Of a DNA stretch of 64,000 nt, positions 10,172 through 60,329 are shown piece after piece; position 1 is the stretch's first letter; the number at the start of each line of letters is the position of its first letter. The notes below the pieces were generated by a model. That model searched no databases, was not told the origin of the DNA, and saw only the letters and a list, made by a program, of their open reading frames with translations. Both the position numbers and the translations under genes were made by a program. Source of the stretch: Lepidodermella squamata (lineage: Eukaryota; Animalia; Gastrotricha); assembly GCA_047495785.1 (NCBI GenBank), contig JBLDXI010000007.1, forward strand, positions 1,488,001-1,552,000, given 5' to 3'.

Positions 10172-11468
10172 ATTCCCTACAAAAAGCTCCGCGCTGGCTG
10201 TAGAGCCGAAGAATGAAGAGTCCTGATACCATTCTGCCACAACTAGCAAACTGCATCAAATCCCGAGATGGCGCTGGCGCGCCATCATTACATCACTCGC
10301 CATTCTGAGCGGCACTTCATGCTCATTTTTTGCGAGGTTACATGTTACATGTTACATTTTGAAACTAAAAGTAACCATGTTTGCTGGTGCCCACTACATA
10401 TATGCAATTACTTGAATTTTTTCCAGAGCATATCAAGCTGATATTTGAAATAACTGCAGCTCATCGGATTGTAACAGGCCGTTACATTCAGTTTTAAAAA
10501 CTTCAGAATCCAATGGCATACCCAGAATCACGTTTTCATTTTCTGTTCTAGCAAATATTTCTAAGCGCTGGTGATTTTTTCGAGACGTAGGTACATGAGA
10601 ACTGTTAAAATTCCTGATTGTGTTGAGATGAATCCAATATCGATGTTGATGTTCCGCAGTTGATGGTATAGGTATAAATCCACCAGTTCAGCTCCTAGAC
10701 CTAGGCGATTGAGTTTACAGCAAATGATTTAAATCTTGCTATTGCATGTCTATTGCTAGCCTTTTAGCCGCATTGACAAAGATCGAAATTTAACAACGAT
10801 CGTCACCAACATCAACAACATCATAGGCGCGGTTCAAATTGAAACTTGAGGTTGTACACCAAACAAATCTCTCGTGGAAGAGAGAAATTTGTTAAGATTC
10901 ATCACAAGTTCTCTGTGGATATAATGTATTTTCAGTGGTAAATATTGTTAATTAATGTTATCGGTTGGTTTGACATAAGCTGGTGCTATAACGAAAAAGG
11001 TGGCATGTGGAAAGTGCAATCTGATCGGCTCTTCAGATTTCGATGCATTATCGTATCACGGGGACTGGGTCATCTCTTCATATTAATTCCAATACGTATG
11101 AGGTAACATCTAACTGAAAATGCAAGGAGACATATTATGCGATTATCCTGAATCCTGATCAAAATGCATTTTTATTGCTCCTTATCTACAACCAGGAGTA
11201 ACCAGCGGTTTAACATCGGAAGCAGCACTATGCCCAAGGCATATGGGATTAGATTAAGAAGTTCAACCTGGTATGTTGCTGTTTGTATTTCTCTCTTTTC
11301 TGCTGTGACTCCGTGTCATAAGAAGCGCCGCTCAGAATGGCGAGTGATGTAATGATGGCGCGCCAGCGCCATCTCGGGATTTGATGCAGTTTGCTAGTTG
11401 TGGCAGAATGGTATCAGGACTCTTCATTCTTCGGCTCTACAGCCAGCGCGGAGCTTTTTGTAGGGAAT
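10172..11468. mobile_element. Non-coding element bounded by ~145-bp near-perfect inverted repeats
   Basis: 10172-10318 is the reverse complement of 11322-11468. Confidence 0.75.
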
Positions 11469-13252
11469 TTGATGCAGTTTCATGAAGCTAGTTTTCTTCA
11501 TATCTTGAAGCTGTCCGCGTTACAAGTTCGCTGTCGCGAATTTGAGGATGACAAATCGAGATATAGCTATGAGATTGAACTCAAGCGACAGCTTACATCC
11601 GGTGTCGAAGATTACCCTAAGAAACGAAGACGAAGTCGAAGAATTCAGCGCTCGCTAGATTATTTTTTATTGGCTTCGGGTCGGTTTTGCTACCCAACAA
11701 ACCATATTCCATCGAATATACTAATATATATCGTGCGAAGCGTGCTCAGCTGGCGGTCTTTTCACGATAATCAGTCAGAAAATGGTCCAGGGTTCTCTCA
11801 AAGTCGGGTTATCCAGCTACAGTGATGACCCCCCCCCCCCCCCCCAATGGACGGCCCTTTGCTGAAGCAGCGATGATCCCTGGCACCCCCTCCTGTTTTT
11901 TCGACCCTCCTGTTTTACACCAATAATTTCGCGGCGCTATCTGGCATGCTGTGATAAGAATTTAGAGTAATTCAGAATTCAGACTTCTCCCATCAATAAA
12001 CTCTTTCACTCTTCGTCCATATTTCAATAAATATTCTAAGAAACTTGTTATTTCGATTTTATTCAAGCCAATCATATGTACAAAACTGAGAATGTAGGAA
12101 GTTCTGCTAAGAATGTGTTGTCCGTGGCGCAGGCTGCATCGGTGCACATCATGATGCCGTCGCATGCAACATGCAAAACACTTATCTGCTAGACCTCCAA
12201 AAAAAACTTGATGACTTTTTTTTCTTAACATTGGATTGAAGATACTTACTTGTTACTCGATGCATTCTTGCCTCTTTAACCAGCTCTCAAAGGTTTCTGC
12301 GAGAAACCCGACGGAAAAACAGCAGTTAACTCGATGAACGCAACTTGAACTTCGTGCCGCAACTTGCTAGTTCGAAGCGCGCGCTTAAGCAGTCACAAGT
12401 TTGAAAAAAATACCGCCAAAACAAAATATAATTTTTGCATTCATAAATTATTTTAAAATTTAATTAAAAATCCAGGAATTAATTTTTTTTAATGTGAATC
12501 CTGTCCCCCCACGAAACCGCGGCCAAAGCGGTTCGCGTTTGCACACTGGCAGGGGGGGTTCAGCCTTTTTAAGAAACCACGTAAAAATTGACTTCGCGCG
12601 GTGACTCAAAACAACAAGTTACCTGTAGAATCTTTGAAAATAAATTATACCATTAGAAAGCTGGGGATATTAGCTACATGCTGGTCTAATTTTTTTCGAA
12701 AATATCTTCTGCTAAGGCCTTGTAATAAGTACCCAAAGTAGGTACACTTTTGCCAATTTTCTTCTATTCTGCGTAGACCTTATTATATAGGGGGCTAACG
12801 GTGTGCCTTTTTTCCTCTTCCCTGGCCATTTCCCCTTTTCGCCGCTGTCCTTTTCCCAACCCTCTCCATTCTTCGGGAGGGCACGACCGTGCCCCCACAA
12901 TTTTATCTTGCGACGCAATTTCGGCGTCACTATGAACTATGAATCCACATTATCGTCCAAAAGTAAAATCCAGCACTTACGGGCTCTGGTGAATTTATCG
13001 TGAATTTTCCGCTGAACGCCAATGGAGATCCGGCAAGCTTATAGGTTTCTCTCGGAGGTTCAATGCTTGCTAATTGAATCGGGATAGCAAGGCGTAATCA
13101 GTAATTAAGCAGTCCTCAATATAACCAGATTTATTTTAGCTTTGATTTTGAAACATAACGGAAATTCCGAGCTCAATTCCGGCCACGGTTCCAAATTCTT
13201 CTACGCTATCAGCCTCCTTTCTCCTCTTTAAGAACAATCATGTTCAATCATT

Positions 13253-15637
13253 TCAAGAAGATAAATCGCGTGGGGAACCGCCATTGCCGCTACCGTTTGG
13301 GGGACCGTTTGGGGGACGGCCATTGCTGTTACCGTTTGGGGGACCGCCATTGATGTTACCGTTTGGGGGACGGCCATTGCTGTTACCGTTTGGGGGACCG
13401 CCATTGATGTTACCGTTTGGGGGACGGCCATTGCTGTTACCGTTTGGGGAACCGCCATTGCCGCTACCGTTTGGGGGACCGGTTGGGGGACGGCCATTGC
13501 TGTTACCGTTTGGGGGACCGCCATTGCTGTTACCGTTTGGGGGACGGCCATTGCTGTTACCGTTTGGGGGACCGCCATTGATGTTACCGTTTGGGGGACG
13601 GCCATTGCTGTTACCGTTTGGGGAACCGCCATTGCCGCTACCGTTTGGGGGACCGGTTGGGGGACGGCCATTGCTGTTACCGTTTGGGGAACCGCCATTG
13701 CCGCTACCGTTTGGGGGACCGGTTGGGGGACGGCCATTGCTGTTACCGTTTGGGGGACCGCCATTGATGTTACCGTTTGGGGGACGGCCATTGCTGTTAC
13801 CGTTTGGGGAACCGCCATTGCCGCTACCGTTTGGGGGACCGGTTGGGGGACGGCCATTGCTGTTACCGTTTGGGGGACCGCCATTGCTGTTACCGTTTGG
13901 GGGACGGCCATTGCTGTTACCGTTTGGGGGACCGCCATTGCTGTTACCGTTTGGGGGACCGCCATTGATGTTACCGTTTGGGGGACCGTTTGGGGGACGG
14001 CCATTGCTGTTACCGTTTGGGGGACCGCCATTGATGTTACCGTTTGGGGGACGGCCATTGCTGTTACCGTTTGGGGGACCGCCATTGATGTTACCGTTTG
14101 GGGGACGGCCATTGCTGTTACCGTTTGGGGGACCGCCATTGATGTTACCGTTTGGGGGACGGCCATTGCTGTTACCGTTTGGGGGACCGCCATTGATGTT
14201 ACCGTTTGGGGGACGGCCATTGCTGTTACCGTTTGGGGGACCGCCATTGATGTTACCGTTTGGGGGACGGCCATTGCTGTTACCGTTTGGGGGACCGCCA
14301 TTGATGTTACCGTTTGGGGGACGGCCATTGCTGTTACCGTTTGGGGAACCGCCATTGCCGCTACCGTTTGGGGAACCGCCATTGCCGCTACCGTTTGGGG
14401 GACCGGTTGGGGGACGGCCATTGCTGTTACCGTTTGGGGAACCGCCATTGCCGCTACCGTTTGGGGGACCGGTTGGGGGACGGCCATTGCTGTTACCGTT
14501 TGGGGGACCGCCATTGATGTTACCGTTTGGGGGACGGCCATTGCTGTTACCGTTTGGGGAACCGCCATTGCCGCTACCGTTTGGGGGACCGGTTGGGGGA
14601 CGGCCATTGCTGTTACCGTTTGGGGGACCGCCATTGCTGTTACCGTTTGGGGGACGGCCATTGCTGTTACCGTTTGGGGGACCGCCATTGCTGTTACCGT
14701 TTGGGGGACCGCCATTGATGTTACCGTTTGGGGGACCGTTTGGGGGACGGCCATTGCTGTTACCGTTTGGGGGACCGCCATTGATGTTACCGTTTGGGGG
14801 ACGGCCATTGCTGTTACCGTTTGGGGGACCGCCATTGATGTTACCGTTTGGGGGACGGCCATTGCTGTTACCGTTTGGGGGACCGCCATTGATGTTACCG
14901 TTTGGGGGACGGCCATTGCTGTTACCGTTTGGGGGACCGCCATTGATGTTACCGTTTGGGGGACGGCCATTGCTGTTACCGTTTGGGGGACCGCCATTGA
15001 TGTTACCGTTTGGGGGACGGCCATTGCTGTTACCGTTTGGGGGACCGCCATTGATGTTACCGTTTGGGGGACCGTTTGGGGGACGGCCATTGCTGTTACC
15101 GTTTGGGGGACCGCCATTGCTGTTACCGTTTGGGGGACCGCCATTGCTGTTACCGTTTGGGGGACCGCCATTGCTGTTACCGTTTGGGGGACGGCCATTG
15201 CTGTTACCGTTTGGGGGACCGCCATTGATGTTACCGTTTGGGGGACCGTTTGGGGGACGGCCATTGCTGTTACCGTTTGGGGGACCGCCATTGATGTTAC
15301 CCTTTGGGGGACCGTTTGGGGGACGGCCATTGCTGTTACCGTTTGGGGGACCGCCATTGCTGTTACCGTTTGGGGGACCGCCATTGATGTTACCGTTTGG
15401 GGGACCGTTTGGGGGACGGCCATTCATGCTACCGTTTGGGGGACCGTTTGGCAGACCGCCATTGCCGCTACCGACTGGGATACCCCCTGGGAAAGGACCT
15501 AAGCCACTGCGGCTTCCGCCTGCGGAAAGTTGATCCCCACTGTCGCTACTGCTCGGAATACCGCTGGATGCATACAGAGGGAGACTTGCAGACAGAGCAA
15601 CAGCCAAAATCGTGAAGTCAAAACGCACGAAATTCAT
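13253..15637 (-). CDS. Secreted Asn/Gly/Pro-rich tandem-repeat protein (794 aa)
   Basis: Signal peptide MNFVRFDFTILAVALSASLPLYA, short unique linker, then G(G/R)PPNGN(S/I)N repeats. Confidence 0.75.
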   Translation of the reverse strand: MNFVRFDFTILAVALSASLPLYASSGIPSSSDSGDQLSAGGSRSGLGPFPGGIPVGSGNGGLPNGPPNGSMNGRPPNGPPNGNINGGPPNGNSNGGPPNGNSNGRPPNGPPKGNINGGPPNGNSNGRPPNGPPNGNINGGPPNGNSNGRPPNGNSNGGPPNGNSNGGPPNGNSNGGPPNGNSNGRPPNGPPNGNINGGPPNGNSNGRPPNGNINGGPPNGNSNGRPPNGNINGGPPNGNSNGRPPNGNINGGPPNGNSNGRPPNGNINGGPPNGNSNGRPPNGNINGGPPNGNSNGRPPNGPPNGNINGGPPNGNSNGGPPNGNSNGRPPNGNSNGGPPNGNSNGRPPTGPPNGSGNGGSPNGNSNGRPPNGNINGGPPNGNSNGRPPTGPPNGSGNGGSPNGNSNGRPPTGPPNGSGNGGSPNGSGNGGSPNGNSNGRPPNGNINGGPPNGNSNGRPPNGNINGGPPNGNSNGRPPNGNINGGPPNGNSNGRPPNGNINGGPPNGNSNGRPPNGNINGGPPNGNSNGRPPNGNINGGPPNGNSNGRPPNGPPNGNINGGPPNGNSNGGPPNGNSNGRPPNGNSNGGPPNGNSNGRPPTGPPNGSGNGGSPNGNSNGRPPNGNINGGPPNGNSNGRPPTGPPNGSGNGGSPNGNSNGRPPTGPPNGSGNGGSPNGNSNGRPPNGNINGGPPNGNSNGRPPNGNSNGGPPNGNSNGRPPTGPPNGSGNGGSPNGNSNGRPPNGNINGGPPNGNSNGRPPNGNINGGPPNGNSNGRPPNGPPNGSGNGGSPRDLSS
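13270..15470. repeat. 27-bp minisatellite with interspersed 12-bp subunits (coding)
   Basis: ccattg(c/a)tgttaccgtttgggggac(c/g)g units in tandem, with higher-order blocks. Confidence 0.95.
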
Positions 15638-22891: not shown

Positions 22892-24564
22892 CTAACTAGT
22901 TATTAGACTTGATCTTGGAAAATTTGTATAGTACTCCCCAGTATCATATTTCGAGCACATATCACCATCACCGAGTTCATTACTGCACGCATAAAACGTC
23001 GGCTGCCGAATGCAATAACTCGCCGTTAGATCCGCGGCTGCGACAGGTTTCGCCTCGTCCGCGTAGTTCAACGCGATGATCTCGCCGAAAAAATTGTAGT
23101 AGTGAACGAACGCCGCCATAAATATGTTGATTTTTCCACTACTTGCCGAGAGACGGTTCGCTTTGATCCATTTTACAAACTTGCTGGTCGTGCACGCGCC
23201 CATTTGCCCCAAATAGCTGCCAGGTTGCATCAATAATTTATCCTCAAACAGCCCCGTTGAAGGTTCCATCACACCAGACAAGACGAACAAATTTTTGTCA
23301 TCAGCCGGTCGCGACCTAACGGCCTGTAAGTTCAGTAAAAAGACAACAATTTGTAAAATTGGAGGCTGATAAATTTTCGGAAATAACCTATTAATGGCGT
23401 TTCGGTTAAAATTTGGGATGCTTATTGGGGACCCGCTACTCCGAGCCAATTTTAACCTGAGATTCAGATTTAAAATCTTCTCGAATTCGCGACAACAAGT
23501 AATTAAATTTTTCTAAATTAAAAGGAGAATAAAAGGAGGAGAAGGAGAATTAAAATAGTTTTTGCCCGTTTCTGAATTGGTTGCATGTTGCGAGCCTAAT
23601 TCTAGATAAGCCAGAGGTCGCTTCTGGAATATTCCTACGAAATTAAGGCAGATTTTCCAGCCCACCTCTGTTTTAATTTTCAGATTTTTTTATTTTGGAA
23701 GTAAAAAATAAAAGAAAATAGATTAATTAATCAATTAATTACCTCAGCCCAATTGACTTCAAGCCCTGTTTGTTCCGTGTAGGAAGCCCCGCTTCCACTA
23801 ATTGCATCAGCCCGCCAAGCTATCGAACTAGCTGGCCCAGTTGCCTTGTCGTAAAAAACGATTATTTGATGGCCCGCAGCTGTCATGTTGCTCAGGCTCA
23901 TCGAACTCGGTCCATTAGGGTAATCGCTAGGCTTCGCGAACATATCGTATCCAAAGTTGATGTAGAGCTTCTTCAGAAACGCGACATGCTGCTGCTGAGT
24001 CATGCTGTCGAAATTATTGAAGTTCAGTATAATAACCTCGCCAGGATTCATATTCAAGAAATCTCTCATGTCGCCGAACACACTGAACTGGCCGAACATC
24101 TCCGGCATAGACTGATGAAGATAGTTGGTAAAGTAAATCTTGTTGTCATTAACCATGTAATAGTCCGGGTTGCGAGCTGCGATCGGCAGGTCGAAATACC
24201 GGATGCCAAGGTACAACTGGTCGAACATTGTTTGTTCCTGAGATATGCCCCAATTCTGCAGCCTGCAGTTCATCAAGTCGTCATTTACGCGCTGGGACAG
24301 CTGAAATGGCATCAAATCGCGGTCAATGGTATAAACTCGGCCGAGATTGGGGTTTAGGGTTCTTGAAAACGCTGCATAGGATCCAGGAATAGCCAGTTTT
24401 GTCAGAGGCAGATCGCGTAGCCTGGCGGGTAAGTTGGTCATCCATTGGTCAAGCGTAGTGTTTGTCGTACATCTTAAAGGCAGCTCGTTTGCATCAGTCG
24501 TTGGAGGAAAAATCACACTGATAATGAGAGAAGAATAAAAGACGTTCCTTAGTGGTTGTAGCAT
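22892..24564 (-). CDS. Secreted PI-PLC X-domain (PLCXD-like) protein, catalytic residues substituted; exons 24564-23743 and 23323-22892
   Basis: Signal peptide; WMTNLP..LPLTKLAIPGSY; QLYLGIRYFDL; FLNMNPGEVIIL; phase-0 GT-AG intron. Confidence 0.85.
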
Positions 24565-25016
24565 TCGTGCTTAAAAAAATGCCTCAACCAAGTCGACAGA
24601 AACTAAACCATCATGCTTGTACTTTTCCAAAAGCATGCAGGTTGATAGTAGGTGCCAAAATATGTGACTCATTCCCCGCTGAGCCAGATTAGACTAGCAT
24701 GAGATGAAGATTTAGTAAAAATATTCATATAGTCTTGTACGTATTTCAGATGTCATTGAAATAAGGGTCCAGCCTTTATGGTCGTTCTGAGTGGAAAAAG
24801 GTGTCCATTTAATAATCGGTGCAATTCTACTGTTGATAATATAACCGTATTTGTTCCTATTACGGCCCGGGCTACTTAAATTCAACCTCGAAATTATTAT
24901 CGGCTGAGCTATTTTTCGAACAAATAAGTATAGTAGTAGTAGTATTTTAGGAAGTTGTGTAATGTGCGAAAAGAACCAAGTAAAAATGGCACCTATATTT
25001 TTTCGTGAAAATGTTT

Positions 25017-25175
25017 CGGGTGTGGCGCGAACGCCGGTACCCATGTGAAATATTTTGCACCCGACTCCACCGATGAGGCAGAGCGCAGGGGTCAGCGGAC
25101 CGCAGTGCAATGGCCCGCCTCGCCCTGGGGCGACCGACTTGCTGAGCTCGGTGCATCCCAGTGCCAGGTAAGTTT
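25017..25175 (-). ncRNA. U1: U1 snRNA (divergent)
   Basis: 5' AAACTTACCTGG, loop II CCATTGCACT, GCTGACCCCTGCG, terminal GGCG-TTCG-CGCC stem. Confidence 0.9.
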
Positions 25176-25973: not shown

Positions 25974-26045
25974 GGGCCCGTCCGGGATTTGAACCCGAGA
26001 CCTCTCGCACCCAAAGCGAGAATCATACCCCTAGACCAACGGGCC
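25974..26045 (-). tRNA. tRNA-Pro(TGG)
   Basis: Cloverleaf, anticodon TGG. Confidence 0.93.
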
Positions 26046-26300
26046 TCATAAAAAATACAATGAATAATAATTTTGCTTGCTTATCAGCTTATCAGCCGGT
26101 TTGATTTTGGCGTCACAAGCGACTATATTATCAGGAATGGCAAAATCGAATCTTGAGTATTTGAAATTTTTATGCCTTGTAATTTTTTAAAGAATATTTC
26201 TTAAAAAAATTGAAATTAATTGTGGGAAAAGTTGTCGTGATATATTTCAAACTAAGACTCGAGGTGTCATTAATCATACCCGTATTAAACTCGATTGGTA

Positions 26301-26390
26301 ACTCACTCGACACCCATTCGACACCCACTCGACACCATTCGACACCACTCGACACCATTCGACACCACTCGACACCACTCGACACATTCG
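26301..26390 (+). repeat. Subterminal tandem array of ~10-bp CCAYTCGACA units
   Basis: About 8 copies of the same motif that forms the TIR. Confidence 0.9.
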
Positions 26391-26672
26391 CCTGCGGCGG
26401 CCATATTATTTTACATTAATTGTTAAAATAAAATAATATAAATAAATTTATCTCACTATTTTTTATATTAATTTTTGATATTGTTCAAGAATAAAATTTA
26501 AAATGAGTCGTTAGCAACATTAAAAACTCATTAGCAGACAAAAGACAATAAAGACAATGCGGCACCGTTGCGGAACCGTTGGCTCCCGTTTCATTTGAAT
26601 TTAAACCTGGTTTAGCTCTGCACTACTGTATTTTACACTGTTCTTTCAGTTTACAGTTTTCAGTCCTTCATT

Positions 26673-27014
26673 ATGGGCCGCAAGTTTAACCCTTTCGATC
26701 CATTTAGCTGGGTTAACAGTGACTCAGTAGATACCATTGATTCGGAATCAGTTACTCAATCAACAGCTCAGACCACTGACTCCGAGTCTTTTTTTCAAAA
26801 CACCACGACGTCAGTTTTCAGCCTTCAAAACAACTCTACTGCACCATGCCCAGTGGAGGCATATGAGATAGTCATATTTTGTCTATCCTTGTTCTTGCTC
26901 GTGGCTGTTGTCACCTCAATTGTTTTCGCCTCTCGTCGCTTCCGGTGCAAATCTAAGAAGCGGTCTAACGATGCCGAGCAACTGCACTACAATCGCCTTG
27001 ACTCTCAAGTTTAA
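26673..27014 (+). CDS. Small single-pass membrane glycoprotein (113 aa)
   Basis: S/T-rich N-terminus with N-glycosylation sequons, TM IVIFCLSLFLLVAVVTSIVFA, basic stop-transfer, YNRL tail. Confidence 0.55.
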   Translation: MGRKFNPFDPFSWVNSDSVDTIDSESVTQSTAQTTDSESFFQNTTTSVFSLQNNSTAPCPVEAYEIVIFCLSLFLLVAVVTSIVFASRRFRCKSKKRSNDAEQLHYNRLDSQV

Positions 27015-27211
27015 TGTTTGTTTTTTTATATTTAGCTGTTACGATGAACAAGCACGAAATTCTTGCATACTCTAACAAAGATCAATCCATCTTTAGATCG
27101 ACAGAGCTGAGCCGATCCGAACTCGAACTGACTATCTTGCAATACGCCCTTTCGCTAATCATGGCAGTGCTGGTCGGATTCGTAATTGCCCGTGCTCTCA
27201 ATATGGACTGA
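27014..27211 (+). CDS. Small protein with C-terminal TM helix (start 27014 or 27044)
   Basis: ILQYALSLIMAVLVGFVIA hydrophobic segment; TAATG overlap with the previous ORF. Confidence 0.4.
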   Translation: MFVFLYLAVTMNKHEILAYSNKDQSIFRSTELSRSELELTILQYALSLIMAVLVGFVIARALNMD

Positions 27212-27437
27212 CATTGTTTCCAATTGAATAATATTATCCTTGGATCGTTTATATCAAATTAACATTTGAAATGCCTGTATCAAATTACTTATCATCATCC
27301 TACGACGGTGAATCGCTAATCTTGTCGTTGTGAATCAAGAGTTAACAGATATTTAATATTTAATATGCTCAATATTCTTGAACTCAATAAACGTTTCTTA
27401 CAATTTCATTGTGTTTTAGGTTTATTCTTATTACTTT

Positions 27438-28580
27438 ATGTTTTCACTTCCGAAGGCTTTTCAGCTTTGCGTCTACTTGATGCTCCTTACGGATTCGATG
27501 GGCTATCCTGCCAGCGGAGAGTTTCTGCTTGACATTTTCAAGCTCAATAGAGACGACCAAGGTCATATCGTGCGGAAGCGTGATACCACGATTGCGAGAA
27601 AGCCGGAGATATTGGAAGTTGCTAGCGGTCTTCAATACTACCGTGCGTATCAAACCGGGTCTAACAAGTGTTTGGCAAATTTCACAAAAATTGGTATGGC
27701 TCTATTGTTATCACTTGCTTGTTTTTATAAGATTGGTCTTTCAGCGGAGAAGATGTGCGAGTGGCCGCTTCCTACTGAAAAATGGGATGAGTTGACGATG
27801 AAGCTCATGTCTTGTTTCGTGAGACATTCCTGTAGCACTATATCTTGTGTGATGACTCTACCCGAAGAAGATATTCGAACGTGGGCAACTTCTTTCAGTT
27901 TGGTCAGCCCTTTGTGCGCTTACCTCGCTACTAACGGTACACATCTTTCATTGGCCGATTCGCTTTTTGATTTGGAAGCCTACAAAAGTTTTGGCATGAA
28001 AGCTGCTGAACTTGCTTCTACTGTATTTAACGTCGCGAGCAAATATAAATTTTTCCAGTTTATAGTCTGTCATTTTTTCCCAATCTACGAATTTGAATCA
28101 GTATTTTCTGCGACTCATTACGTTCCTCAAATAATATGCTTTATCGCAGCCGTCTATTTTGAGTCTCAGTCAGGGTTTCTGGCTGTAGTATTTGACTTGG
28201 GTATTGAAATCTTTTACACAAGCGTTGTGTACTACTGGTTTGGTCGACTTTTAGGCATTTTTTATTTGGATTATTACACAGTTTCCATCGTCATCCGTTA
28301 TTTGATTCTATTCATTTCTTTCGGCGTGAGATCGTTTATATTTTTCTACTATTTGGCGCGAATTGCATGGACTTTGTCGTCTTCTCTTTTCAATCATATA
28401 CATAACATCTTCAAAAAAAACAAAAAAGTCCAATACACCCCAACCAATCAGCCTCCTCAAGAGACTGTGCCTCTCATGGAGTCTAGCAATGAAATAATGA
28501 AGCAAGGCATTTTGAAGGCGAGTAATTGTTCAGGTTGCTCAAATTGTGGACGACGAATTTCAACCAGGAAACGGAATTGA
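27438..28580 (+). CDS. Signal peptide + GEX1/Brambleberry/Kar5-like cysteine-rich domain + multiple TM helices; probable in-frame intron 27694-27744
   Basis: After splicing: CLANFTKIAEKMC (C-x11-C) EWPLPTEKWDELTMKLMSCFVRHS...CVMTLPEEDIRTWATSFSLVSPLCAYL; hydrophobic C-terminal half. Confidence 0.6.
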   Translation: MFSLPKAFQLCVYLMLLTDSMGYPASGEFLLDIFKLNRDDQGHIVRKRDTTIARKPEILEVASGLQYYRAYQTGSNKCLANFTKIGMALLLSLACFYKIGLSAEKMCEWPLPTEKWDELTMKLMSCFVRHSCSTISCVMTLPEEDIRTWATSFSLVSPLCAYLATNGTHLSLADSLFDLEAYKSFGMKAAELASTVFNVASKYKFFQFIVCHFFPIYEFESVFSATHYVPQIICFIAAVYFESQSGFLAVVFDLGIEIFYTSVVYYWFGRLLGIFYLDYYTVSIVIRYLILFISFGVRSFIFFYYLARIAWTLSSSLFNHIHNIFKKNKKVQYTPTNQPPQETVPLMESSNEIMKQGILKASNCSGCSNCGRRISTRKRN

Positions 28581-28784
28581 TTGTAAATTGATGCATTGTG
28601 ACTCTGCGTGTTTTGACATTCGATTCGCTTTTGTGTCGCGGCTTTTTATACCCATTTTATACTATGTTATACTCAATGCTCTTTTCTCTTTTTCCATGCT
28701 CTGACATGTAAGCTCATTAAATTTCCTCAATTTAATCAAAATGATTCATGTGGTCTGATTTTTTTTGTCGATTTTAGAGAATTA

Positions 28785-30962
28785 ATGTCCCAGTTTGTTT
28801 TCGGAGACTTGCCTTTTCCGCTATTCTTGATGGATCCCGAAGATCGATTTGAAGAAAGCAGCGATAATTTCTCAACGATGCAGGCAACTACGAGCGAAAC
28901 GACTCGATATCACGATGCCCTTGCTGACCGAACGAATACTTGCTCGGGAAATATTTCAAGTCACTTCGCTAAAAAGAAGTGCCGACCCCGCGCTGGTAAC
29001 GGAAAATTTGCTCCATATTTGCCTTTCAATGAGCGGAACCGCAAGGATCGTCATCTGCAACGCTACTGCGTTTTTTGCGGAAGCCCGAAGAGCACGAAAT
29101 TCCTCAAACAGCATATCTTGCGCTACTGCCCGGAGACTGCCGGTCGTCGATCGTCCGATGAAGTCATCAAAGCTGCAAACTATGTGCGCAAGGCTGCTAT
29201 CTTTCAAGGATCCAAACATGGACTAGCCCATCGTAAAACACCATCTGCCCGAGGTGTGAAAAGGGTGAATTTTTCAACTAATTCCGAATCATGTCATCGT
29301 TCGGCGCAAATGGATTCGACAGAGATTTCACAAGGATCTTGCGTTTGCTCAAGAATCAGTACGCCGAAAAATGCCCATTCTCAAGGATTCAGCGATAATG
29401 GAACTTCGAATTCCATCTGTACTTGTTCGGAAAGCCAACGCCGTGCTCCAGTTGCGTGCTCTACACCTGCTCTTCAGAATATGGATGCTGATGTCTCTCA
29501 TCCAGTCGATTTCACATTCAACAGCTCATTTGATCAGTCCAATTGTTCGGGTGAGAACGAGTATTTCGGTGACGATGGCGCTGTCTCCTCTCGGCAGCAG
29601 AGCGAATCTAATATTTCACATGTTCAGACTTCGAATGAAGGCGTCGTATTGGACGACACTTATTTCGATGAATCGTCTGACGAAGAGACATCAGGCGAGG
29701 CGACGTTGTCAAAGAAATTAACCCGTATCGCGCTGTCTCCAAGCCCAATTAAGAAGACGAGAAAATTGAGTAAAAAATATGTCACCAATGATCCTCGCTT
29801 GAAGCCGGCCCTCGAGCATTATAAAGATCCAGATTTTAAAATGGAAGCAACGCAAGATGATCGCAATGCTAAAACTGTTCGATCGCGTTATTCCGGACTA
29901 ACCGGCATCCTCAATTTGGCAGGCATATTCACTGTTGAGGATATGCTCAATGTTGACAAATGGTTCGATTTCGCGGCTCGTGAGGATCGATTGATTACGA
30001 CAAATTTACGCGGTGGGGAAGAGCCAGTCTCGTGCCACAGTCTCTACATGAGATTCATGGCTTTAAAAGACTTCTTGCAAATGTTTCGAGACAACTTCCT
30101 TTTACCGAGACGTCTTGTTAGCGAATCGGAGCGTGAAAAAATCGATTTCATCATTACCAGATTCCTTGACCCGAGGATCAAGCAGTGCAATGCTAAACGT
30201 GGCAAGGCACAGGCTGCGCTGAAACACGAAAGAATTGATGAAAAGGTCACTATTCATCTAGCGCCACAATACGCTGAATTCATTTCGCAGACGATCGCCG
30301 AGATGGAGAAAGCAGGCCAAATTGTGCCGTATGCCTTTCGAATTGCGAGAATTGTTGTTAAAATGAACGCCTTCAATGGCTGCCGCCCTTCGAGTCTCGC
30401 AGGCATGAAGGAGGCTGAATTCGATAAGCGATTTTCCGAGATCCCGGGCACTTGGACAGTTCATGTCCTGGAGACGAAGAACGGTAAGCGGTGCTTCCCC
30501 TACGTTACGATGGACCAGGAACTTGTGGAACTCTACGACGAATACCGCCGCAAGTTCCGGCCGAAGCCGGCTGACCCTAAAAGCGCCAAGTATTTACTGC
30601 TACGAAGTGATGGCAAGAGGTTTGATTGCTTGTCCTACTACGCAAGTATTTTGTGGGACAAATTCGTCCTAACTCTTCCATCTACTGCCCGACCGAGTCT
30701 CGCATCATATCACTTTTCAATGCAAAGGCGCATGATGCAGACAAGTTCTCGCCACAATCAAATTCCTGGCTTGACTCCCGCCCAACAGAAACAGGTCAAC
30801 CGCTACCTCCACCACACCGATGGCGTTGCCGAGCAAATCTACGAGCAATTTATTTCACCTCAGGAACATGCTGAAATTTTCTTGAAATTTAAGGAATTTC
30901 TCAGTTCTCAGAAAAAACCCAAACAATCGCCAAGAAAAATGCCTAGATCAAAGAAACCTTGA
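28785..30962 (+). CDS. Tyrosine recombinase with N-terminal zinc finger (725 aa)
   Basis: CVFC...HILRYC zinc finger; acidic linker; GCRP (R), ETKNG (K), SMQRR (R), YLHHT (H), AEQIY (Y) in phage-integrase catalytic order. Confidence 0.85.
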   Translation: MSQFVFGDLPFPLFLMDPEDRFEESSDNFSTMQATTSETTRYHDALADRTNTCSGNISSHFAKKKCRPRAGNGKFAPYLPFNERNRKDRHLQRYCVFCGSPKSTKFLKQHILRYCPETAGRRSSDEVIKAANYVRKAAIFQGSKHGLAHRKTPSARGVKRVNFSTNSESCHRSAQMDSTEISQGSCVCSRISTPKNAHSQGFSDNGTSNSICTCSESQRRAPVACSTPALQNMDADVSHPVDFTFNSSFDQSNCSGENEYFGDDGAVSSRQQSESNISHVQTSNEGVVLDDTYFDESSDEETSGEATLSKKLTRIALSPSPIKKTRKLSKKYVTNDPRLKPALEHYKDPDFKMEATQDDRNAKTVRSRYSGLTGILNLAGIFTVEDMLNVDKWFDFAAREDRLITTNLRGGEEPVSCHSLYMRFMALKDFLQMFRDNFLLPRRLVSESEREKIDFIITRFLDPRIKQCNAKRGKAQAALKHERIDEKVTIHLAPQYAEFISQTIAEMEKAGQIVPYAFRIARIVVKMNAFNGCRPSSLAGMKEAEFDKRFSEIPGTWTVHVLETKNGKRCFPYVTMDQELVELYDEYRRKFRPKPADPKSAKYLLLRSDGKRFDCLSYYASILWDKFVLTLPSTARPSLASYHFSMQRRMMQTSSRHNQIPGLTPAQQKQVNRYLHHTDGVAEQIYEQFISPQEHAEIFLKFKEFLSSQKKPKQSPRKMPRSKKP

Positions 30963-31585
30963 ATTAGCTTCGTTAATATTTTCGAATTCCTCGTGAAAGC
31001 TCTTATTCAATGCTTTTTGCATGTAAATGATTGCCTATTGCCAGTTCTTGTAAATTGTTTGTAAATTTCTATTACTCATTCGAACTTATTGTTGACGTCA
31101 TGGAAACATCCGCACGGATCCGCAATATTTATTACTTAATTCATTTTTTTTTATAATTTATTGGTTCTTAATCATTCGTGCAATATCAGAATAAAGACGA
31201 CGTGGTTTTAAATAAGTCTTTTTCATGTATCCGGTGATTTTGTCGGGGAGAAATGTTCCGGCTGTAACAAAGACAGCGTCACCTAGCTGACGGAATTTCA
31301 CGAATATTGTGCTAAGCTAGAGCCTCGGATAGAATAATCAGAATGCCTTGCAAATTTCGCTGAGTTCGCTGAGTTATCAAAACCTTGCCGATTTATCAAA
31401 ATGGTGTCGAGTGAGTTATATATTGATATATAACAAAGCGATGTGCATAGTAAAAAAATATTAAAATCGACAAAAAGATGAGCTCCGTCCAGCAGCTGCT
31501 CAAACAATTCTTGGTGCTCGGTGAAGGCTAAACATCTATTATACCTGCCAAACAGTCGAGTAGAAAACAGCTTATTTTTTAGCGA

Positions 31586-32485
31586 ATGGTTGCACCGCCG
31601 AATTGCGTTGAAATCGCACTTGGAATTTCAATTTTTTGCTTAATAGTCATATTCCTTAACGCACCCCGAGTGCTTAATACAGACAAGATTTATTACCTAT
31701 CCGATCAGCAGCTAGGGCAGTTCATTAACCAGAGGTCGTGGGAAAATGTATCCTCCTCGACTGAGAAAAAACAGGCGGAACCTTATGTGTCACCCTACTT
31801 CTGCAAAGGCCCTAATAAGGCGCTGTGCGACCGCGTTGATGGATTCATGGACGAAAAGCCATTCTATCAAAGATCGTCACGTTTATGCCAGTTGATGGAT
31901 AAATTCGGAAGTGACAAATGCTGGCGGCATCACTACGCAATTTTCTATGAATTCCTATTGCCAAGATGGCCGAATAGGATCATCAAAATTCTTGAAGTTG
32001 GACTCGGCGCGAATGGTGAATGGTCGCCGTGGAATTTGAGTGAATTTCGACGGCCTGGAGGGTCGTTATTCGCCTGGAGAACTTACTACCCAACCGGGTT
32101 GATTTTCGGGGCTGATAATGACACAAATGTCCTGGTGAATGCTTCTCGAATTCAAAGTCACCACGTCGATCAGCTCGATAAGGAAAGCGTTAGAAAATTA
32201 TTTTCCGACTACGGCACTTTTGATTTGATTATCGATAACGGGTCGCATGATTTCAAGTCCAACTGGGTTTTTCTGGAGTTTGCGTACAAATACGTGAGGC
32301 CTGGTGGAATTTTTGTGACGGAAGATATCGCGATTTCGGAGATTGATAAATATGTTAATTTCATGATTGATCAATCGTTGAATGGGTCGCTCATTAGCTC
32401 ACCTTCATTTCACAATACTGGCAAGTTCAACAGTGTTTTCATGCTGGTTGAAAAACCACGTTTTTTAAATAAAAGAAAACGATAG
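31586..32485 (+). CDS. Type II membrane class I SAM-dependent methyltransferase (MycE/TylE-like sugar O-methyltransferase family), intronless
   Basis: N-terminal TM; FGSDK..HHYAIFYE; KILEVGLG; GGSLFAWRTYYP..IFGAD; FDLIIDNGSH; VRPGGIFVTED. Confidence 0.8.
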   Translation: MVAPPNCVEIALGISIFCLIVIFLNAPRVLNTDKIYYLSDQQLGQFINQRSWENVSSSTEKKQAEPYVSPYFCKGPNKALCDRVDGFMDEKPFYQRSSRLCQLMDKFGSDKCWRHHYAIFYEFLLPRWPNRIIKILEVGLGANGEWSPWNLSEFRRPGGSLFAWRTYYPTGLIFGADNDTNVLVNASRIQSHHVDQLDKESVRKLFSDYGTFDLIIDNGSHDFKSNWVFLEFAYKYVRPGGIFVTEDIAISEIDKYVNFMIDQSLNGSLISSPSFHNTGKFNSVFMLVEKPRFLNKRKR

Positions 32486-36108: not shown

Positions 36109-37405
36109 ACTTAGACGCTAAAAATTCATTTCGAGAGGAAATTTTATGTTTTAGTTGTCCATGAAAACAAAACTTGTTTAATCTTAAAAGAAAATCCCAA
36201 AAACAAAACAGCCGTGTTCATTCCTTAAAAATCTTAACTTTTGGCTTTTAATTGCAAATTGCTATTTGATAAAGTTTTACTGTGATTTTGAGGAAAATCG
36301 CGGAAAAATTCGCCGGATGAATCGGATTCGATGCCGATTTGCCGCGACGTTGCCCTTGCCGCCGTTCTGACTTTGAATAAATCGGAACTTTTTCAAAATT
36401 TCAGCACAACAAAACGGTGGCTGATTTTCAACGCGAAGCAAGGCCGCTTGTTGGAAAATGACCTAGTTCAAATTGCATAATGGATTGGCGGTAGAATTCG
36501 GCTAGAGAAAATTGAAATTATTCGAGATTTCCAATTTACTCAACCCAACTACTAGTGTCACTAACTAAGGCAGGACTACTTTTAACGCGACCTTGCTGCT
36601 GGCAATAGTGGCCTATGATAAGAAGTCTGCGTTTTGCGAACGGCCTGAGAGACGGCGGTCGATTAGTAGGTCAAGTCCCTGGGAAAGATGCCCAGTGACA
36701 GGCGAGAGAGTAAGAAGGGGAGTGGAACTGAAACTAGAACTGATGCTACTGCACCTTCGAATTGAGCTGGCCGGACTATTCCCGTGGGTGTAAGGATCAT
36801 TCTACGTGAGTAATGATCATTATTATACTGGGAAATTTATTGGTAAAATTCATTAAATTCAAACAAAATTCAATTTTAAGAATTTTCGAGATTTTTATTA
36901 AATTCAATAAAAAATTTTAATTGTTTGAAATTTATTTTGAATTTTGAATAGAATTAATTAATTTCTTTAAAGGTCAAATTCCTTGAAATTATCAAATCGG
37001 GTACTCATTTCTAATTTCGAAATTCAAATTTTGCCAATTTTTCAAAAATTCTTAAATTCAACGAAAAATAATAGTTGGCTTCTTCTACGTTGGCGTTTCA
37101 CAGGTGTTGTAACTGCTAGTTTAATGATTACGCTGGTGCGATAGGTCCGGGCAGCTGAAATTGACGTTAGTCTCCGTAGAAGAAAAACCTGGCAACCGAG
37201 GCCGAGGGCGCGGGAAACGCCGAGGATAAAGGAGCGTCTTATTATATCTTATATCATCGAAATGAAGAGAATAAATGTGTTTCCGATGAATTAATTGGTT
37301 TTTATAGGTAAAATGATTATTCCGCTGGTTCCGATGGTTTAGGACAAAACTGGCACGATGGAAGTTATTATTGTTCCGAAGATTTGAAGTTATTTCGTAA
37401 TTTTA

Positions 37406-37564
37406 CGGGTGTGGCGCGAACGCCGGTACCCATGTGAAATATTTTGCACCCGACTCCACCGATGAGGCAGAGCGCAGGGGTCAGCGGACCGCAGTGCAAT
37501 GGCCCGCCTCGCCCTGGGGCGACCGACTTGCTGAGCTCGGTTCATCCCAGTGCCAGGTAAGTTT
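37406..37564 (-). ncRNA. U1: U1 snRNA (divergent)
   Basis: Near-identical to 25017-25175. Confidence 0.9.
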
Positions 37565-39097: not shown

Positions 39098-40156
39098 CTA
39101 TTGGTTCACCGCCGGCTGTACTGGTGTTTGGTTGGGAGCCAGTACGGTCGGAGCTGATTGCAGAGGGCAGATCTCGGTTCCACAGCAGCGGGTCTGCGAA
39201 AAAAACGTTACATTATTAAAACCAAAATAATTAAGGTGGATTTTTTTTTATTAACCGTGTAAAGATTGGCGGGGTCGATCCAGTGGCGCTTGCCGGTGCA
39301 GAAGATCATGAGCTCGCCCTTGGGCACCTGCGCATCCTGGCTGGCGGAGCGTGGCGGGTCAACGATGCCTGACGTGCAGTTCTCGCTGTTGTAGTTGTAC
39401 AACTGCTGGCCGCAGCAGCCCCAAGTGAGTGTCGCTTGCGTCGACAACAAGAAGCGGTAGCTGGCACACACGACGTAGACGGAGCCGAGGGGCAGCGGCG
39501 CCTGTTGCGGCGACGGGCGGTTCTGAACGGTGCCGGAGATGCACATCTGCGTGTCCGGGTCGTAGACGGCGAAGTTGCAGCAGCGGTGCGTGTCGGTCGT
39601 GATGTACAAGTAGCCGCCGCAGTTGATGCGGATCAGACGCTCGGCCGGGGTCGGGGTTGGCATGCCGGCGACCAATGGCAGAATGACGCCCTGCTGGCAC
39701 TTCTGGAAGCGCGTGTCGTACGAGTCGTCGTTGCAGCACGCCAACAGCTTGTAAGTGTCCTTGTAGACGGATTGTTGGCAGCACAGGAAGCCGAGCGGGC
39801 AAGTCGACCAGTTGGTCTCGACTGGGCCGTAGACGTTCGAGGCAGTCGGGGCTGGCAGGATGGAGGACACGCTCGACTGAACGGCGTTTTGGACCGGGTT
39901 CTGAACGGCCTGCTGGACAGCGGCTTGGGCAGCTTGGACGGCGGGCTGAGCGGGGTTGGCGAAGTTGCTCGGGTTCGAAGGCCGGAGGAAACGCGACAAG
40001 AACGGGATGGTGCCGTCATCTGATGACTGGGCTGTGTTATCAGCTATCAACGTGAGAGAAATTCAACGATTTAGTTAGGAATCAATAAGACTTACCGTTG
40101 TTTTGAGCAGAGCAGGCGCCGATAAGGACGGCGGCGACGATAAGTTCCCGGATCAT
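39098..40156 (-). CDS. Secreted galaxin-like dicysteine-repeat protein; exons 40156-40096, 40043-39256, 39193-39098
   Basis: Signal peptide MIRELIVAAVLIGACSA; repeated CC...Y...C motifs; GT-AG introns keep the frame. Confidence 0.8.
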
Positions 40157-42258: not shown

Positions 42259-45134
42259 TCACAGCACTTTCAGTTTTCTTTTCCACTCATCATCGTCTGA
42301 TAAATCGCCGTCAGTGATTTCGTAGTCAGATTCATCCGAGATTTTGTCAATTTCAGTATTATTTTCAATCACTATCTGGTCATTTAGGCTGATCTCTGAT
42401 TCTGGAACTTTGCCAAGCCTTGGGCACAGCTTGGATCCGCAACAACGTGTCTAAAAAAATGTGTAATTAAGGGTTGATAAAAATCGAGCATTTTTAATAA
42501 TACCTGCATGAGGTTGGCCGGGTCTATCCAGTGCTGGATGCCTCCGGAACAGTAGACCATGAGTTCGCCCGGCGGACGTTGTAACTTTTGCGAATAGGAT
42601 GTTTTTACTATCTCACCTTCGGTGCAATTTTCCTTGTAAAAGAAGACAAACAAAAACAATAATTACCGCGAGTAGGATCACATTTTTAATGGCTTCAAAT
42701 GCGCTACAGCGAACTAAAAATAAGAAAAAATTTAAAAATTTCGCGCGAAAACAGTTAACAATTAGCTTGATAAAATATGAGAAAAATTAACTGAGTCGAC
42801 GGACTGAGCTGAAGACAGAGTTATCGTAAAACTTTGGACTCGGCCGGTTGGAAAAATGATGCGAATATGGGGAAAAAGAAGCAATAGCTTTCACCATAGA
42901 CAATAGCTAACTGTCTAGAGTTGGAAAAAAATTTACGCCAAGATGAAATGAAAAAAAGTGAACGGAAAAAAATCAATTTTCGACGATATTGCAATATTGT
43001 AAAGATGTCAAAGTTGCTGGACCCTCAAGCCGCTTCAATCGATCGAGTTTCGAAAATTCGGTCGAGTTGACGAGCGAAAATGAGTTTTTCGCGCGCTCAA
43101 ATACAATTTTATAAAAATTTAAAAAAATTCATTTTAAAATGCGCAATTTCCATCATAAATATGAGTTTCAAGCATATAAAGGACATGAGGGATTATAGGC
43201 CTAAATATTTTGCCAGAATTATTTTCCTAATATCTAACCTGAGAAAGAACGAATTGAGGAGGATGAAATTATGCATCACGGATCTCAATCTCGAAAATTT
43301 TCGATTTAAAACAGAGTTCAGTGATATTCTATAGTATCGCTCCTAATTCGAATTCCCAGTCTTCAGACTCTAATCTTCCGTCAAAAACGAATTTATTTAT
43401 CATTTATCAGAGAAAGCAAATAAATAGATGAAGTTAAGATTTACCAACTAACAGACTTGTGGGAATTTTCTATTATCGTACTTAAATTTACCATTTTGTA
43501 GTTGAACAACTGCTGTCCACAGCAGCCCCACGTTCGAAGGCCTCGATACGTAATAGGATAGCGATACATTTCGCACACGATGTACTCGCGTTTGCCGCGC
43601 GTTTTATTAACCGCTCCAACCTCACTCTGAACCGAAGCCACTCGGCGCGATTTCGCGTCTAGCCCGTGCGGAAACCGCCTCGCATGGCTGTGGTGCGGAT
43701 AGCGTCCCTTTCGCCGAGTCGGATATTCAGAGGAATTCACCATTTCGGAATTTTTCGGCCTTTGAGACGCAACTCGGCGGGTTTTTCGCGTTGATAGCAA
43801 CATTATAGCAGTTGTTGGCTCAGCCGTCGTAGTAGTAGTCATCTCAGGTGTGGTCGTGGCTATAACCTTGGTCGTCTAAAAAACGAAATTTAAAAATTTA
43901 AAACAAAGAAACAAATTAATTTTTAAAATAATTAATTTATTTAATTTTTGAAAAAACTTTAGATCAAAATATCAAAAAACTTTAGACTTTTAATCAATAT
44001 TTCCCCTAATAATAATGCCTTTCCAAGCCTTTCGGGAAATTCCTGGTTAATTAAAAAAAAATCCCGCATTTTTTTCATAGCGTGACCTAATTTTAAAGTT
44101 TATGCTCAGTGTCAAGTTTAGAAAAAAATGGGTCACCTGAAAGGTAAATTCTGATATAAAATTAGAAATTTAAATAATGTGTGTTCCCAGTTGGTTGAAA
44201 AATCTAAAATTTAAATAAACTGTTGAGAACGATGCAATTCTAACCATTTTTCCAGACTCGGAGCAGCGAAATTTCGATGTGTCGTAAAATGTCCCGTTGC
44301 AGCATCGGTAGAGAGTTGGCGCAAAGTACAATTCGTTATCCGGGCCGCAGAAAACTTGCTGAAGGCGAGCTGCTGGTGTTAATCGAGGCATGCCCTCTTT
44401 CAAGGGCGCCACACCGCCTGCTACACACGCTTCATACCTGTTATCGAACGATTCAACGCCGCAACATTGTAAAATGTTGTAGTGATTTCGATAAACAGCT
44501 CCTTCTTCACAGCACAGGAAATCTGGCGGGCAAACGCTTATCGTAGACGGCAGTGGGCCGAAAATGAGGGAATTCGTCTCGTGGCCAGTAAGTTGGTCGT
44601 TCCGGTTGAGTGATTTCATGTGATGAACGGGTATTTGCACGCCGGACGGGGTGATTATTGTCGAGGTTGCCGGGTCTGGTACGTTGACTGGGTTGGCCTG
44701 GCGAAGTTGGAAAACGTCGCGAGTCTGCGCTTCGGCCACGATTTTCTTCGGCAGAAAACTCGCCTCAGTTGGCATGAAATTAGGGTGATAGGTGAAGGGT
44801 ATTGGCCGGCTAACGACTGAATTGAAGCTGAATGGGTTGAAATAATTGTTTGATGATCGAAAAACGGGCACCATAGGGGCATTGCTTGGCGAGATTTGAT
44901 CGTTGCGATGTTGCGCTGGTGCAACAACGGCGCCGCTCGATCGATGAGGCGATGGGGCGGCAGGGGCGAGAGCTGCTGATTTCGGGACCACTGGAACGGC
45001 GGCCGTTGTGAAGGCGATCACGTTTTCGTTGGTGTCGATGAATTGGGACGACGATTCGGAGTAGATGAAGACGGGGCCTTTGTTATTTTCGAAAAGCTGA
45101 TCTCGTATCCCTCGTATCGGGCTACCACTGTCAC
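42259..45134 (-). CDS. Galaxin-like dicysteine-repeat protein paralog; exons 45134-44245, 43875-43492, 42632-42504, 42450-42259; first exon unresolved
   Basis: Collinear similarity to the 39098-40156 product (FLCC, TWGCCGQQL, GELM..C..HWIDPANL, TRCCG); Thr-rich insert; acidic tail. Confidence 0.78.
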
Positions 45135-49856: not shown

Positions 49857-50015
49857 AAACTTACCTGGCACTGGGATGAACCGAGCTCAGCAAGTCGGTC
49901 GCCCCAGGGCGAGGCGGGCCATTGCACTGCGGTCCGCTGACCCCTGCGCTCTGCCTCATCGGCCGAGTCGGGTGCAAAATATTTCACTTGGGTACCGGCG
50001 TTCGCGCCACACCCG
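49857..50015 (+). ncRNA. U1: U1 snRNA (divergent; stem III variant)
   Basis: AAACTTACCTGG...CCATTGCACT...GGCGTTCGCGCC. Confidence 0.9.
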
Positions 50016-50099
50016 TAAAATTACGAAAAATGAAATCCGTAAAAACCGCGGAATGGAAAAAATACCGAACATTTGAGACGGGCGCCAAACTGCGTTAAA

Positions 50100-55376: not shown

Positions 55377-55408
<32 letters not shown>

Positions 55409-55412
55409 ATAA
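54115..55412 (+). CDS. Secreted PLCXD-like protein, catalytic residues substituted, poly-Asp tail; intron 54931-54980
   Basis: Signal peptide; LAIPGSYAS; GIRYFDLPV; YPGEVVLL; exon 2 homologous to the paralogs. Confidence 0.85.
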
Positions 55413-60200: not shown

Positions 60201-60329
60201 CGAGATGAAGATCGACGCAAGGCCGATAAAGCAAATCGAAAAAGGGAATTAAGCAATAAAAGTGATAGAACTTTGCAGGACGTTTTTGAGCTGTATGGAT
60301 TAGAAACCTTGGATGCTGCTTTGATGTAA
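57267..60329 (+). CDS. Secreted PLCXD-like protein, catalytic residues substituted; exons 57267-58118 and 59775-60329
   Basis: Signal peptide; VAIPGSYAA; GIRYFDLPI; NPGEVVIL; same phase-0 intron position as the paralogs. Confidence 0.85.

Follow-up and report, generated by a model that had tools for sequence, protein, structure and literature searches.

Does a compact block of four genes, one for a predicted tyrosine recombinase (YR) and three for membrane proteins, represent a mobile element in an animal nuclear genome, and if so, of what kind? The question is raised by a 64,000-nucleotide stretch of the genome of the gastrotrich Lepidodermella squamata (contig JBLDXI010000007.1 of assembly GCA_047495785.1, positions 1,488,001 to 1,552,000; hereafter the window), in which such a block extends over about 5.1 kb from end to end between two short terminal inverted repeats (TIRs). 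With modest confidence, we favor the interpretation that this block is an integrated copy of an undescribed family of elements of about that length, made up of a YR gene and three membrane-protein genes, which moves by YR-mediated excision to a circle and reintegration.

The original prediction, made from reading the DNA sequence, described a perfect 14-bp TIR with TA at both ends enclosing four co-oriented open reading frames (ORFs), the last for a recombinase and the other three for membrane proteins, in a tRNA-rich setting about 250 bp from a tRNA-Pro gene. This layout was recovered in full (coordinates of all features are collected in Table 1). The TIR and its TA are present at both ends, and the four ORFs (113, 65, 380, and 725 amino acids [aa]) are intact and encoded on one strand. 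By simple hydropathy, each of the first three products contains at least one hydrophobic, transmembrane-like segment, and the window was found to hold 31 tRNA genes, with the tRNA-Pro gene 253 bp to the left of the element. The gaps among the ORFs and the ends measure 204-440 bp and therefore leave no space for an additional gene. Reverse transcriptase, RNase H, DDE transposase, capsid, polymerase, and packaging genes are all absent from the four ORFs, and no other domains were detected in any of them by Pfam.

The modeled fold and the family alignment identify the product of the last ORF, of 725 aa, as a tyrosine recombinase. Residues 329-725 were modeled with AlphaFold2 from a 12-sequence alignment, with a mean predicted local distance difference test (pLDDT) score of 81, and when this model was compared to the PDB using Foldseek, the top 50 matches were all tyrosine recombinases (probability 1.0, best E 7e-4), including XerH, XerA, Tn1549 Int, Cre, and lambda Int. 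Matches to predicted viral structures, at 8-14% identity, were spread over phage integrases, nudivirus VLF-1, and giant-virus integrases, which shows a common predicted fold and no particular kinship. The window recombinase itself retrieved no match in direct searches of Pfam, PHROG, NCBIfam, or PDB sequences, and a word-indexed protein search, its words drawn from the low-complexity N-terminal part, returned nothing. A profile of the family, searched against PDB sequences, retrieved Tn1549 Int as its best match (E 0.06), with Arg II, the GH motif, and Tyr aligned. Additionally, two of the relatives described below, P0006 and P0007, match a PHROG integrase family (E 3e-9 and 2.5e-6), and because phmmer links the window recombinase to both (E 9e-17 and 3e-10), it would be placed in the integrase family by transitivity. 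Neither the window recombinase nor its relatives matched DUF3435 in Pfam, and DUF3504 was not matched at E <= 1 by the window recombinase or at E <= 0.1 by ten relatives.

The catalytic residues and the zinc finger were assessed by tallying conservation over the sequences that cover each column of the family alignment. The R-K-R-H-Y series proposed for the recombinase is invariant in every covered family sequence: R534 in 11/11, K565 in 9/9, R648 in 10/10, and both H677 and Y686 in 8/8. The N-terminal CxxC..H..C finger, also part of the original prediction, is present as C95, C98, H110, and C115 and is kept in the family, with the first two residues conserved in 8/8 sequences and the last two in 9/9. 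The finger weakly resembles zf-C2HC_2 and UBZ4-type fingers.

When 1.84 billion representative proteins were searched exhaustively with phmmer, only 11 relatives of the recombinase were retrieved (E 8e-33 to 9e-4), the longer of which combine an N-terminal C-x2-C...H-x4-C finger with a C-terminal region of about 370 residues. One metagenome project (SAMN13674978; several ENA and Logan assemblies) is the source of ten of the 11, while P0011 comes from ERR12037361. Five or more lineages, with protein identities of only about 25-35% between them, are represented in the single assembly ERZ27333047. Four lineages have an intact recombinase gene, two have one that is split over two frames (one frame change each), and one has a truncated gene. 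With these divergent lineages and its mixture of intact and broken recombinase genes, the family appears to behave like a mobile element. None of the window's own proteins was present in public collections by exact look-up, and JGI metagenome contigs scanned twice with conserved recombinase peptides yielded nothing.

The relatives also bear on the three membrane-protein genes, which had been regarded as cargo. The largest of these genes, ORF3, encodes a protein with a hydrophobic N-terminal leader, a dibasic RKR site, a cysteine-rich middle, and a hydrophobic multi-pass C-terminal half, and its family keeps C107, C126, C137, C160, and P158 invariant in both alignments made (A5, A6). The gene directly upstream of the P0001 recombinase is an ORF3 homologue (29% identity, E 3e-35), the ORF3-like P0015, of which P0016 is a paralogue, lies upstream of the P0003 recombinase, and the ORF3-like P0014 lies downstream of the P0004 recombinase. 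An ORF3 homologue adjoins the recombinase gene in at least four divergent lineages. The P0001 element (L001/L002/L011) has the same four-gene order as the window, namely a 122-aa Ser/Thr-rich single-pass protein, a 78-aa single-pass protein, a 327-aa ORF3 homologue, and the recombinase. Because they are linked to the recombinase in distant relatives, the three membrane-protein genes are, on present sequence comparisons, a conserved core module of the element and not cargo.

The two smaller membrane proteins are similar to their counterparts in layout. ORF1 encodes a Ser/Thr-rich N-terminal part with three N-glycosylation sequons, followed by a transmembrane segment at residues 66-84 and a basic tail, and proteins of this layout are found in L001 (122 aa) and in L015 (108 aa), the latter after the recombinase. 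The start codon of ORF2 overlaps the stop codon of ORF1, and the position equivalent to ORF2 is occupied in L002/L011 by the 78-aa ORF with its one transmembrane segment. When the small membrane proteins of the window were compared to those of the relatives, the layout was common to both and the sequence similarity was not significant. Searches of ORF1-3 against Pfam, PHROG, NCBIfam, and the PDB returned nothing above noise. For ORF3, a single-sequence protein search returned nothing, a profile search returned P0015 and P0016 only, and the ORF3 relatives had no match in Pfam. Hexamers resembling poly(A) signals are located 3' of ORF2, ORF3, and the recombinase gene, and weakly hint at three transcription units.

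Counting the outer TA on both sides, the inverted repeat at the ends of the element is 16 bp long and perfect. The end motif, searched for in the whole window with up to two mismatches, is confined to the two ends and an adjoining array (0.1 occurrences expected), and within the window the TIR is thus not the abundant unrelated repeat that would have spoken against the original prediction. The array, overlooked in that prediction, consists of eight units, the first of which is overlapped by the left TIR arm. The right end holds a single copy of the array unit, and array-internal units match the right end over 14 bp. We propose that the left array units are candidate recombinase-binding iterons. 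The relatives similarly have short-period tandem arrays (9-17-bp units, 3-4 copies), located either in the gap that separates the 3' end of the recombinase gene from the next membrane gene or upstream of the first membrane gene, the same relative position as the window array. A 10-mer, GTCGCCATTT, is common to L007 (2688) and L015 (4750) and resembles the window unit, a similarity noticed post hoc. As a separate observation, the right junction sits in a 20-bp AT-rich near-palindrome (9-bp arms, 2-nt center), which could result from a target preference or from chance in AT-rich DNA.

A mechanism can be proposed for the interpretation that we favor. The recombinase would bind the 11-bp terminal unit, of which the right end has one copy and the left end eight, and its N-terminal finger may act as an arm-type binder of the left array, as in the lambda and Tn916 integrases. 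It would then synapse both ends and excise the element as a circle, in which the two 14-bp arms would face each other across TA and form a palindromic recombination site. This site would therefore have the classical YR layout, in which inverted arms of 11-13 bp surround a short crossover region (PMC3212892). The circle would reintegrate elsewhere, as proposed for Cryptons and shown for Tn916/Tn1549. Two gene orders were found in the family, with the membrane genes followed by the recombinase (window, P0001, and P0003) or with the recombinase followed by the array and a membrane gene (P0004 and P0008), and these could fit a circular map opened at different points. The membrane proteins would enter the secretory pathway, and since deeply divergent lineages have retained them alongside the recombinase, they probably act in the persistence or the transmission of the element itself.

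On the features compared here, the window element matches no described type of eukaryotic YR element. The published eukaryotic YR carriers are the 2-micron plasmids, Tec1-3, DIRS/PAT, Ngaro, VIPER, and Cryptons (PMC3212892), and the DNA-only carriers among these, Cryptons and Tec, are described with a YR domain only (PMC4157794). Cryptons, similar to the window element, are eukaryotic DNA elements of a few kb with a YR and no reverse transcriptase, and are thought to have a circular intermediate; animal Cryptons carry the recombinase alone and no terminal repeats, while other Cryptons have direct repeats of 4-6 bp (PMC3212892). The window element is unlike Cryptons in its TA-flanked 14-bp TIRs, subterminal array, C2HC finger, and three conserved membrane genes, and in giving no DUF3504 match in Pfam. 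For the Tec elements, the target duplication is TA. Tec1, Tec2, and Tec3 of Euplotes crassus also resemble the window element in their length of about 5 kb, inverted terminal repeats, and a YR among few ORFs (PMC3212892). In contrast, Tec1 and Tec2 have a DDE transposase of their own, thought to perform transposition, which the window element does not have, and Tec elements are known only from ciliates (PMC4157794) and have no membrane-protein module, whereas the window element is found in an animal.

The bacterial elements Tn916 and Tn1549 similarly use a YR on short inverted ends, have a circular intermediate, and bind subterminal repeats with an extra N-terminal domain. The Tn1549 Int is both a top fold match and the best PDB sequence match of the family profile, although the relation in sequence is marginal. 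Unlike the window element, Tn916 and Tn1549 are much larger and carry conjugation genes. DIRS, PAT, Ngaro, and VIPER elements are eukaryotic and use a YR, and the DIRS1-like ones have inverted terminal repeats; however, they need a reverse transcriptase, RNase H, and gag, none of which the window element has, and a DIRS/Ngaro retroelement was ruled out since no reverse transcriptase is present. Starships, a more recent addition to the eukaryotic YR carriers, are YR-driven and carry other genes, but they are fungal elements of tens to hundreds of kb with a DUF3435 'captain' and variable cargo, in contrast to the 5 kb and fixed genes of the window element. A Starship was ruled out by the lack of DUF3435, the wrong size, and the wrong host. 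The yeast 2-micron circle is comparable in being a DNA of about 6 kb with four genes that include the tyrosine recombinase FLP, but, as a free plasmid of the nucleus, it has inverted repeats of 599 bp, partition genes, and no membrane proteins, and no Flp-family Pfam match was found for the window element. The original proposal of an undescribed, compact, cargo-carrying animal YR transposon is therefore retained for its recombinase, for its compact TIR-bounded four-gene block, and for the lack of a matching eukaryotic type, and is given up as regards cargo.

We would like to note that several observations weigh against the interpretation that we favor. Terminal inverted or direct repeats were sought in the relatives and nothing convincing was found, the contigs being short; moreover, L001, L002, and L011-L014 represent one locus (99.4-100% identity) and hence are uninformative on element boundaries. 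TA is the sole direct repeat at the ends, whereas known YR elements have a longer crossover of 4-8 bp. The canonical box-II His is not conserved, position 645 being S, N, G, Q, D, or T across the family, and the AlphaFold2 model of ORF3 has a pLDDT of 41, which is uninformative and supports no function for the membrane module. Only a single copy of the element is visible in the window, where its flanks are unique, and since they are unique, the duplicated tRNA arrays of the window offer no paralogous empty site.

Several of these points can be read in favor of other explanations. One is that the inverted repeat is a coincidence or an internal site, and that the true limits lie elsewhere, for example so as to include a neighboring methyltransferase gene, or that there are no defined termini, as in animal Cryptons. 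In 28 (9%) of 300 composition-preserving shuffles of the window, one or more perfect inverted repeats of 16 bp occurred whose arms lay 1-8 kb from each other, and given this rate the repeat by itself is only suggestive. The failure to find TIRs in the relatives points the same way, as does the order of recombinase, array, and membrane gene in L007 and L015, which makes the array region internal there. Nevertheless, the two arms lie exactly in the gaps that bracket the four-gene block, for which we estimate a chance of about 1e-4 (one arm per gap of about 625 bp; 628 x 624 / 4^16), and the start of the array falls in the left arm. The methyltransferase gene is missing from the relatives, and host tRNA and small nuclear RNA (snRNA) genes start within 253 bp on the left, so that we regard this explanation as unlikely. 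Quite unlikely, in our view, is that the TA-flanked TIRs mark the action in trans of a DDE transposase of the Tc1/mariner or pogo type, with the YR and membrane genes as passengers of a non-autonomous cut-and-paste element. A direct repeat of TA alone is a hallmark of Tc1/mariner-type DDE transposition, and the window element does have a short perfect TIR with TA on each side, as in Tc1/mariner elements; however, TA is palindromic and could equally belong to a 16-bp TIR. In the MarCry-1_FO fusion, the 16-bp TIRs and the TA duplications are ascribed to the mariner transposase (PMC3212892), and a pogo-type DDE_1 fragment adjoins one relative, L015. Against this, the element contains no DDE transposase, the YR and membrane-gene set is kept as a unit in distant relatives independent of any DDE gene, and eight copies of the 11-bp terminal unit are found within the element, with analogous arrays beside the relatives' recombinase genes.

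Another explanation, that the block is a cluster of resident host genes whose recombinase has been domesticated, its mobility lost, would agree with the intactness of all four ORFs, with a base composition and third-codon-position GC content (GC3) near those of neighboring host genes, and with the single visible copy. We consider it improbable, as the full catalytic set is retained, unlike in domesticated DUF3504 genes (PMC3212892). The recombinase gene is split in two of the relatives' lineages and truncated in one, which indicates a dispensable gene, and the family distribution is extremely patchy. The least probable of the four is an integrated, capsid-less, envelope-only agent, in which the three membrane proteins would form or decorate membrane vesicles, so that the circular DNA, once excised, would be packaged or passed between cells or hosts. 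Plasmaviridae L2, pleolipoviruses, and haloarchaeal plasmid vesicles are precedents outside animals. The compact single-strand layout with overlapping stop and start codons is consistent with such an agent, and so is the co-occurrence of an integrase with three secretory-pathway membrane proteins across deep divergence. However, no structural, replication, or packaging gene is present, none of the membrane proteins matches a viral protein family, and the recombinase resembles viral integrases at the level of fold only.

The setting of the element is an animal nuclear genome, with Cys-loop receptor, SOCS-box, GT92, and galaxin-like ORFs in the window. The galaxin-like repeats hint at a host resembling marine invertebrates, and TTTTCAG showed no enrichment, which gives no support to a nematode host. 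The 31 tRNA genes are arranged in segmentally duplicated arrays within which three U1 snRNA genes are found, the element thus lying amid clustered small-RNA genes, and paralogous ORFs with weak likeness to the phosphatidylinositol-specific phospholipase C (PI-PLC) X domain lie on both sides of these arrays. Because the block is bordered by host tRNA genes, U1 genes, and host paralogues, we rejected the possibility that it is a fragment of a larger integrated virus. To the right of the element, at a distance of 168 bp and outside the TIR, lies an intronless ORF similar to bacterial macrocin-type O-methyltransferases; it is absent from the relatives' loci and may be a horizontally acquired host gene. 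Elsewhere in the window, a pair of 147-bp arms looks like a foldback or miniature inverted-repeat transposable element (MITE)-like inverted-repeat element, unrelated to the recombinase element, and a 27-nt tandem repeat is open in several frames on both strands and has no Pfam match. A Ty3/gypsy-type reverse transcriptase fragment with RNase H, located in a GC-rich patch 17 kb away, is likewise unrelated. The DDE_1 fragment adjoining the relative L015 is of the pogo/Tigger type and is probably a separate neighboring transposon.

Table 1. Features of the element, its relatives, and the window. Positions are those of the window unless a relative is named.
Feature	Position	Strand	Basis
Left end: TA, then 14-bp TIR ACTCACTCGACACC	26299..26314 (14-bp arm 26301-26314)	+	motif search
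Subterminal array: 8 tandem 10-11-bp units, CACTCGACAC(C) alternating with CATTCGACAC(C)	26304..26385	+	tandem-repeat search
ORF1, 113 aa	26673..27014	+	ORF list, domain search, hydropathy
ORF2, 65 aa, one C-terminal transmembrane segment	27014..27211	+	ORF list, hydropathy
ORF3, 380 aa, cysteine-rich membrane protein	27438..28580	+	ORF list, alignments, hydropathy
Recombinase gene (predicted), 725 aa, intact	28785..30962	+	ORF list, phmmer, model, alignment
C2HC zinc finger (C95, C98, H110, C115)	29067..29129	+	family alignment
Predicted core-binding and catalytic domains, residues ~339-711	29799..30917	+	AlphaFold2, Foldseek, column counts
9-bp unit, 2.2 copies, near right end	31356..31375	+	tandem-repeat search
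Right end: exact reverse complement of ACTCACTCGACACC, then TA	31403..31418 (14-bp arm 31403-31416)	-	motif search
AT-rich near-palindrome at right junction	31415-31434
Tandem arrays beside relatives' recombinase genes	L001 401-434; L007 2526-2567; L015 4732-4804; L006 4998-5031
ORF1-layout proteins in relatives	L001 856-1224; L015 4960-5286
DDE_1 transposase fragment adjoining a relative	L015 5765-6277	-	Pfam, E 2e-7
tRNA-Pro gene	25974-26045
U1 snRNA genes (three)	25016-25175; 37405-37564; 49857-50016	-; -; +
Intronless ORF similar to TylF/MycF O-methyltransferases	31586-32485	+	PDB 3ssm, E 5e-15
Ty3/gypsy-type reverse transcriptase fragment with RNase H	7972-9042	-
147-bp arms, 99% complementary, 1 kb apart	10172-10318; 11322-11468
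27-nt unit, ~82 tandem copies	13228-15637
ORFs weakly similar to PI-PLC X domain	22892-24564; 54115-55412; 57267-58154; 59766-60329	- (first)
Galaxin-like-repeat ORFs	39208-40050; 44170-45021	-; -

Recombinase-driven DNA elements are rare in eukaryotes, and the described animal ones, Cryptons, have been reported without terminal repeats or extra genes. What is new here is a recombinase locked to a three-membrane-protein module across lineages at about 25-35% identity, together with the defined inverted ends and binding-site-like array of the window copy. Very little of the family is found in public data (11 relatives in 1.84 billion representative proteins), so existing annotation says nothing about it. 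The finding raises the question of why a DNA element that integrates by recombination should encode secretory-pathway membrane proteins, for which transmission between cells or hosts, a selfish addiction system, and host manipulation are possible answers. Were the element indeed the integrated form of a capsid-less agent, it would represent in animals what plasmaviruses, pleolipoviruses, and haloarchaeal plasmid vesicles are elsewhere, and would be kept in the genome by a YR of its own.

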